32,126 nucleotides of DNA from Octopus bimaculoides (lineage: Eukaryota). The position numbers and the translations under genes were made by a program. The stretch's first letter is position 1, and each line of letters begins with the position of its first letter. The notes beneath the pieces are model-generated. The model was not told the origin of the DNA. It saw nothing but the letters and a program-made list of their open reading frames with translations, and did no database searches. The stretch is taken from assembly GCF_001194135.2 (NCBI RefSeq), contig NC_069000.1, positions 16,991,032-17,023,157 of the forward strand, in the 5' to 3' direction. This document shows, one piece after another, positions 143-27,364 of the stretch.

Positions 143-475
143 TGTGTGTCAGCAAGTCATGGCTGACGGAGTAAAGCTTGCCTTTGACATCCTTTGCCTG
201 ACAAGTAATATTATTCTCATGACAGCTCTTCAAGTTAATCTTGAACGATATATAACCATGGTGTCCCGCTTGACTGGATTTGATTTCTTTTAGCTTGGTG
301 GCTTCATTGTTGATGGACAACTTGTGGGTCTTAGTTTCTGGTGAGTAAGTTAAGACAGAGATATTGGCACGCAGTATTTCAATCGTGGTTTCGTTGAAGT
401 CACCCGAGAAGGCGAAGTCACATTTTACTGTCACATTCTGATTTAGCTTTGGTTTTGGTAGGTAAGACAAGTGAG
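143..475 (-). CDS. Exon 18, Ig-like (V-set-sized) domain (T)[20 protein letters not shown]...[31 protein letters not shown]
   Basis: ctctattgcag / A|gtaagt, symmetric phase 1-1, 333 nt. VTVKC and ITCQA are separated by 72 residues. The C-strand Trp is absent, so the Ig call is pattern-based. Confidence 0.75.

Positions 476-27364: not shown

Follow-up and report, generated by a model that had tools for sequence, protein, structure and literature searches.

A cadherin–Ig gene of coleoid cephalopods that probably encodes a GPI-anchored adhesion or recognition protein

A 32,126-nucleotide stretch of the Octopus bimaculoides genome (hereafter the window; contig NC_069000.1, positions 16,991,032 to 17,023,157) carries on its minus strand a gene in which five extracellular cadherin (EC) repeats are followed by immunoglobulin-like (Ig-like) domains. 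We propose, with a probability of about 0.65, that this gene encodes a glycosylphosphatidylinositol (GPI)-anchored cadherin–Ig protein that serves in adhesion or recognition and is peculiar to coleoid cephalopods. Animal cells recognise one another mainly with two toolkits, cadherins and Ig-type adhesion molecules, and, to our knowledge, the described bilaterian families normally keep them in separate proteins. Cephalopods are known for an unusual expansion of their protocadherins. In the databases searched, the compact, conserved and expressed hybrid described here is confined to the group with that expansion, and it would be a concrete case of domain shuffling giving a new adhesion architecture in a lineage that has a complex nervous system. 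The molecule as such is not of a new type, as both domain types, GPI-anchored cadherins and non-bilaterian cadherin-plus-Ig proteins are already known. The gene is already present in databases under misleading names ('protocadherin Fat 4', 'uncharacterized protein'), and its architecture appears to be undescribed; literature searches found no description of a cephalopod cadherin–Ig family.

Gene structure and the cadherin arm

The gene was rebuilt on the minus strand from open reading frames (ORFs), cadherin motifs and splice sites, and was then compared with the NCBI protein 'protocadherin Fat 4 [Octopus bimaculoides]' (P0001, 825 amino acids (aa)); exon 4 (22180-22121) was placed with the aid of that protein. 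The window, whose base composition is 36% G+C, holds 18 exons running from 27364 to 143, in which every acceptor is AG, every donor is GT and the phases chain. The spliced product has 709 aa and is 100% identical to residues 1-709 of P0001. An original prediction, made from the sequence alone, had claimed a signal peptide, EC1-EC5 and a 333-nt phase 1-1 exon, together with about 19 N-x-S/T sequons and, in the last exon, the cysteines of VTVKC and ITCQA plus one extra Cys. The rebuilt gene confirmed this arrangement: 19 sequons were counted, and in exon 18 VTVKC holds Cys617, ITCQA holds Cys690, 73 positions further on, and KSC holds the extra Cys683. The exons, with their positions in the 709-aa product, are as follows.

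Exon 1, 27292..27364, minus strand: ATG at 27364 and signal peptide, aa 1-24, with a hydrophobic core at residues 3-22; equals the start of P0001; the donor leaves phase 1.
Exon 2, 26245..26322, minus strand: start of EC1, aa 25-50; GT-AG, phase 1 to 1.
Exon 3, 24727..24875, minus strand: core of EC1 with Cys68-Cys83 and LDYE, aa 51-100.
Exon 4, 22121..22180, minus strand: strand of EC1, aa 101-120.
Exon 5, 19600..19692, minus strand: end of EC1, calcium linker NENDERPRF and start of EC2, aa 121-151.
Exon 6, 17617..17715, minus strand: EC2 with DVDDE and Cys181, aa 152-184; alternative donor at 17613.
Exon 7, 14999..15127, minus strand: middle of EC2 with Cys189, aa 185-227; alternative acceptor at 15147.
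Exon 8, 14448..14552, minus strand: end of EC2, linker and start of EC3, aa 228-262.
Exon 9, 13521..13628, minus strand: EC3 with EDEDVN and Cys290, aa 263-298.
Exon 10, 10416..10550, minus strand: middle of EC3 with Cys301 and LDYE, aa 299-343.
Exon 11, 8841..8942, minus strand: end of EC3, linker and start of EC4, aa 344-377.
Exon 12, 7682..7792, minus strand: EC4 with SDLDET and Cys407, aa 378-414; opens the best Pfam Cadherin stretch (residues 362-452 of the draft).
Exon 13, 6559..6699, minus strand: middle of EC4 with Cys419 and LNYE, aa 415-461.
Exon 14, 4974..5078, minus strand: end of EC4, linker and start of EC5, aa 462-496.
Exon 15, 4081..4185, minus strand: EC5 with LDVDKSN and Cys524, aa 497-531.
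Exon 16, 2878..3021, minus strand: middle of EC5 with Cys538, aa 532-579.
Exon 17, 2630..2687, minus strand: end of EC5, without a DxNDN linker motif, aa 580-598; the donor leaves phase 1.
Exon 18, 143..475, minus strand: first Ig-like domain, aa 599-709, 333 nt, phase 1-1; Cys617 on predicted strand B, Cys690 on predicted strand F, Cys683 extra.

Exons 6 and 7 can be joined in frame in two GT-AG ways, 17617|15127 or 17613|15147, the second giving a product about 9 aa longer with one more Cys. The draft had 17613|15147; this was dropped for 17617|15127, the junction in the NCBI and O. sinensis models. The complete relatives described below have 4 extra residues at this point.

As judged from its sequence, the protein is a member of the cadherin superfamily with five calcium-type EC repeats. 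The Pfam Cadherin profile (PF00028, cut-off 28.8 bits) scored 43.8 bits on the window draft, 60.2 bits on P0001 and 79.4 bits on P0059, one of the complete relatives. Calcium linkers of the DxNDNxPxF type, DVNDNPPFF among them, were read by eye at the four EC-EC junctions, as were the DVDDE, EDED, DLDE, DVD and LDYE/LNYE motifs within the repeats, while EC5 has no terminal linker motif, as expected of a last repeat. EC2 to EC5 are each one three-exon unit with introns at equivalent positions. The exons of these repeats are all phase 0-0 through exon 16, and exon 18 and the following exon 19 are phase 1-1.

Every EC also contains a pair of cysteines 8-15 residues apart (68-83, 181-189, 290-301, 407-419 and 524-538), located between the predicted C and D strands. 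In EC2 to EC5 the pair straddles the intron between the first and second exons of the repeat unit, and the cuttlefish proteins keep it as well. Such pairs are unusual in cadherins and suggest that a disulphide closes the C-D loop.

The C terminus and the cephalopod relatives

The C terminus had been predicted to lie outside the window, and exon 19 was indeed located just past window position 1 (L001 38510-38842). This exon is 333 nt long, phase 1-1, and encodes a second Ig-like domain of the Cys-Trp-Cys kind. The original prediction had also proposed annotation of further exons downstream, which succeeded as far as exon 19: neither a third Ig-like exon nor an exon for a GPI signal was found in the readable 10 kb beyond it. 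The O. sinensis and O. vulgaris models do extend into a third Ig-like domain, and the octopus exon probably lies in an assembly gap, at L001 40341-41376 or 41814-42913. The O. vulgaris model (P0058, CAI9737719) ends in GSLIVVVVQNVG, probably a spurious terminal exon; since it matches L001 43606-43641, the third Ig exon is bracketed between L001 38843 and 43606.

Two complete relatives were obtained: P0061 (970 aa), from Sepia esculenta larval mRNA, and P0059 (971 aa), from a species close to Sepia. They are 77% identical to one another and each is 35% identical to the octopus protein. P0059 is present on 8 and P0061 on at least 24 mRNA-sized contigs (about 3.1-3.4 kb), two of the P0061 sequencing runs being Sepia esculenta RNA-seq. 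Each contig has one uninterrupted ORF, and the junction between the last EC and the first Ig-like domain lies inside it. Both proteins consist of a signal peptide, five ECs, three Ig-like domains (one V-like, then two related C2-like) and a hydrophobic C terminus. Apart from the signal peptide, only their last 17-18 residues are hydrophobic; no transmembrane segment lies in between and no cytoplasmic tail follows, and stretches of small residues (STAN or ATA, NGNG) precede the hydrophobic end. From this arrangement we infer that the C-terminal stretch is a GPI-anchor signal, and that the octopus protein would be anchored in the same way.

In the databases searched, full-length relatives came only from cephalopods, namely three Octopus species, Sepia esculenta and the close relative of Sepia. 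Beyond these family members the scores drop sharply to generic Fat4/CELSR repeats at about 25% identity, and homology searches turned up no paralogue in any species. The prediction of a lineage-specific protein therefore stands for cephalopods, but the lineage meant is the coleoids rather than a single species; likewise, the proposed search for the architecture yielded relatives with five ECs and three Ig-like domains, but not the paralogues that had been sought along with them.

The ratio of nonsynonymous to synonymous substitution (dN/dS) was estimated between P0059 and P0061, with dS of about 1.1-1.6, near saturation, so that the ratios are rough. The EC arm gave 0.15 (71% aa identity), compared with 0.021 for Ig1 (94%), 0.063 for Ig2 (84%) and 0.024 for Ig3 (95%). 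The Ig-like part is the most conserved portion of the protein, which argues against its being junk or a mis-joined exon.

We considered whether the union of cadherin and Ig-like parts could be an annotation artefact, in which two neighbouring genes were fused across a gapped intron. Intron 17, which separates the two parts, does contain two assembly gaps, and the O. sinensis orthologue is annotated as two gene models (P0051, XP_029647764, and P0057, XP_029647763). However, the O. sinensis break is inside EC4, away from the border between cadherin and Ig, and a single O. vulgaris model, P0058, covers both parts, although exon 4 is absent from it. The donor of exon 17 and the acceptor of exon 18 are both consensus and both phase 1. 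Furthermore, dozens of independently assembled mRNA contigs from two other species have the same architecture in an uninterrupted ORF. Fusion of two genes is thus highly improbable.

The gaps themselves were also compared with the mRNAs of the relatives. The window has nine runs of N (including 15551-16385, 20108-20791 and 24479-24601), all of them intronic: they lie in introns 3, 4, 6, 8, 9, 13, 15 and 17, with two in intron 17. Two larger gaps border the window. The same DNA is part of chromosome record CM046620.1 (assembly GCA_001194135.2), in reverse orientation and with identical gaps, and this public assembly therefore closes none of them. Aligned with the intron-free mRNA contigs of P0059 and P0061, the octopus protein is colinear: up to residue 820, the exon 17/18 junction included, no insertion or deletion is longer than 4 aa. 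No exon-sized piece is therefore hidden in the gaps of the window.

A different reading of the C terminus is that the octopus protein is soluble and secreted, as the 825-aa NCBI model would have it, and acts in the extracellular matrix or mucus. That model stops after the second Ig-like domain without a hydrophobic tail, and a skin-mucus proteome paper on Octopus vulgaris names several 'protocadherin Fat 4' proteins. However, P0001 reaches its stop (ELMR, then stop; L001 38510-38859) by skipping a consensus phase-1 donor, GAAG|GTGAGT, and reading five codons of intron sequence; the 825-aa model is therefore truncated, whereas the models of the other two Octopus species reach the third Ig-like domain. 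The supplements of the mucus study do not contain the accession numbers of this gene, so the link to that proteome is unsupported and was dropped. A variant that looked soluble, P0053, was rejected as a secreted isoform: its contig (logan:SRR27666079_27990, L010 3044-3072) has Illumina adapter sequence, AGATCGGAAGAGCGTCGTGTAGG, at its end, and its C terminus 'RDRKSVV' is therefore an artefact. We regard a secreted form as quite unlikely, and GPI anchorage as the better account of the family.

The Ig-like tail

Exon 18 and the next exon encode, with moderate confidence, Ig-like domains, as had been predicted for exon 18. Structure models are the basis of this assignment. AlphaFold2 modelled the two-domain tail (exons 18 and 19) as two all-beta domains with a mean pLDDT (predicted local distance difference test) of 76.8, and a Foldseek search of the PDB with this model gave 1493 matches at E<=0.001, the best being Fab chains at E of about 1e-8 over 218-254 aligned columns. 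When exon 18 was modelled alone, the mean pLDDT was 66, and the best 50 Foldseek matches were all Ig-superfamily chains, mostly V-type, with most TM-scores at 0.5-0.63. The V-type matches included a nanobody, CD8a, CD47, CD96 D1, the PD-L1 V domain and the V domain of amphioxus IgVJ-C2; a CD22 Ig1-3 chain was also matched. Cys617/690 and Cys734/797 fall on the predicted B and F strands of their domains, about 63-73 residues apart, and domain 2 has a Trp (KWY) at the position expected on strand C.

Sequence searches with the tail gave weaker signals. A profile search of PDB sequences returned weak matches, all to Ig proteins (CD22 at E 0.011, an antibody light chain at E 0.059). The best Pfam Ig match anywhere in the tail, that of C2-set_2 to domain 2 of P0059, scored 18.2 bits where the cut-off is 21 (E 0.003). 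When 1.84 billion representative proteins were searched exhaustively with HMMER, six were found: the cadherin–Ig family itself, one fish protein (E 2e-5), CD22/Siglec-like as read from its sequence, and two repeat proteins that were discounted. One matched protein, P0054 (7221 aa, 14 matched stretches), looks by eye like a giant, repetitive protein without cysteines, similar to bacterial adhesins, and was not counted in favour of Ig. A word-index homology search with the tail alignment returned the O. sinensis protein alone.

Ig2 and Ig3 have all four cysteines in register and align weakly (P 6e-4, hhalign probability 28%), while profile comparison of Ig1 with Ig2 detected no similarity (E 0.16); a simple triplication of one Ig exon is therefore unsupported. 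Phase 1-1 exons are typical of Ig domains. The Ig part may have arisen by the addition of such exons, and the exon shuffling put forward in the original prediction is a reasonable inference from the phases, although no donor gene was found.

Several results weigh against a GPI-anchored cadherin–Ig protein. In the tail, no Ig profile exceeded the curated Pfam threshold on any of the three domains, and exon 18 had no Pfam Ig match even below it. The alignments that fed the AlphaFold2 models consisted of only 3-4 sequences, the mean pLDDT of the exon-18 model was 66, and the PDB is so rich in antibodies that it favours Ig matches for any disulphide-bridged beta sandwich. At the C terminus, the octopus sequence lies outside both the window and the readable flank, so that its GPI anchor is extrapolated from relatives only 35% identical to it. 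No expression, localisation or binding data for the gene were found, and the mucus proteome supplements, as noted above, do not contain its accession numbers.

The first group of these points raises the alternative that the tail is not of Ig descent but is some other, strongly diverged beta sandwich, such as a degenerate cadherin or an FN3/PKD-like domain, that resembles Ig in models. The sole Pfam match on exon 18, a weak one to DUF7619 (E 4e-4), would fit this, as would the E-values of 4e-4 to 4e-3 in the Foldseek search with exon 18 and the dissimilarity of Ig1 and Ig2. However, no cadherin or FN3 chain was among the best 50 Foldseek matches of either the two-domain tail or exon 18 alone, and all of the weak sequence matches to proteins of known fold are to Ig proteins. 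The placement of the cysteine pairs, the strand C Trp of domain 2 and the exon phases are also those of Ig domains. A non-Ig origin is accordingly judged unlikely, and Ig-like remains our assignment for the tail.

Comparison with known adhesion proteins

The original prediction could not assign the protein to a named family, and no named family was found to fit: tests for the defining features of Fat4, protocadherins, classical cadherins and hedglings were all negative, and the protein belongs to none of these. Fat4 runs to about 5000 aa: 34 ECs, then EGF and LamG domains, and finally a membrane-spanning segment with its cytoplasmic tail. The best generic cadherin matches of the octopus EC repeats are indeed to Fat4 and CELSR repeats, but the octopus family has 5 ECs, no match to EGF or LamG, and no internal hydrophobic segment in any member. 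The name 'Fat 4' is a best-hit label and not a statement of orthology. The octopus-expanded protocadherins (PMC6339937) belong to the same organism and superfamily. In protocadherins a single large exon encodes the 6-7 ECs of the ectodomain, and a transmembrane segment and cytoplasmic tail come after them, whereas this gene uses seventeen exons for the signal peptide and five ECs (the ECs being in exons 2-17) and has no transmembrane segment.

T-cadherin (CDH13) is closer in plan. It has five ECs, no transmembrane or cytoplasmic part, a GPI anchor and a need for partners in signalling, all of which the octopus family would share, its anchor being read from the relatives. T-cadherin is, however, a vertebrate classical-type cadherin with a prodomain and without Ig domains, whereas the octopus family has three Ig-like domains between EC5 and the anchor, gave no match to the cadherin prodomain family in a profile search, and has its nearest cadherins among Fat4, CELSR and protocadherin repeats, not classical cadherins.

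The base of the protein has its nearest parallel among the IgLONs, which are GPI-anchored. Like these and other GPI-anchored Ig adhesion molecules, the octopus family has three Ig-like domains and then a putative GPI signal at the C terminus. The three IgLON domains are of the C2 type (PMC5967153), whereas the first Ig domain of the octopus family is V-like and a five-repeat cadherin arm is present at its N terminus. At the sequence level the searches detected no resemblance to IgLONs, and none of the I-set or C2 families exceeded threshold. In its probable working, by analogy, the protein most resembles a T-cadherin set on an IgLON-like base.

Sponges, cnidarians and choanoflagellates have hedgling-type cadherins, which likewise unite cadherin repeats with Ig domains. 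The hallmark of hedglings, which are large and span the membrane, is an N-terminal Hh domain adjoining a VWA domain (PMC4054682). In the octopus protein, by contrast, EC1 directly follows the signal peptide, there is no match to Hh or VWA, and the family is small, probably GPI-type and so far restricted to cephalopods. Three long ORFs on eukaryote-like contigs, P0174 and P0175 among them, have many cadherin repeats and then a clear Ig domain; on two ENA contigs such ORFs, ending in or followed by clear Ig domains, span L020 8011-19244 and L019 10001-14848. VWA ORFs lie upstream of P0174, which is hedgling-like, and precede the ORFs of L020. The ORFs of L020 and L019 look hedgling-type, and they show that cadherin repeats are joined to Ig domains outside cephalopods too.

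Proposed mode of action

If the GPI-anchored reading is correct, the anchor would tether the protein to the outer leaflet of the membrane, while the Ig-like domains, strongly conserved and close to the membrane, would form a rigid stalk or docking module. The arm of EC1-EC5, stiffened by calcium, would point outward and make the adhesive or recognition contacts. Because a GPI-anchored protein has no cytoplasmic part, any signalling would have to pass through a transmembrane partner, and the highly conserved Ig part would be the obvious candidate to bind it.

The greater conservation of the Ig base than of the cadherin arm suggests a testable division of labour. One possible, although doubtful, version is a two-part recognition molecule of coleoids in which the faster-evolving cadherin arm sets specificity while the near-invariant, IgLON-like GPI base docks a conserved transmembrane co-receptor. 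If true, this would be a signalling arrangement without counterpart among the described bilaterian cadherin families.

Repeats and mobile-element traces in the introns

Most of the gap edges in the window adjoin simple repeats, (CA/TG)n, (TA)n or AT-rich triplet runs, which appear as CVCV, YIYI and IIII in ORF translations; examples are the edges at 1015, 1646, 2153, 3101, 5962, 13918, 20108, 24479 and 24601. The gaps are probably unassembled microsatellites rather than lost unique sequence.

Two transposase remnants were detected on the plus strand, one in intron 1 (26698-26934), which weakly matches Transposase_1, a DDE family of the mariner type (E 1e-4), and one in intron 6 (15372-15550), a helix-turn-helix ORF (HTH_38, E 4e-4) cut by the gap at 15551. 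Three further plus-strand ORFs (18064-18420, 22323-22775 and 28186-28521) look mobile-element-like by eye (e.g. 'NCKENYIGKT') and had no Pfam match at E<=0.01. In intron 3, similar short ORFs recur at 23427-23570 and 24172-24360 on the minus strand and at 24179-24340 on the plus strand, for example with the pattern '...RRVCN...IDAG..ETNVV..KVSR...', and are likely to be a dispersed repeat. The O. vulgaris model has an odd extension at its N terminus, which a 'KWLQTR' motif in the same intron resembles.
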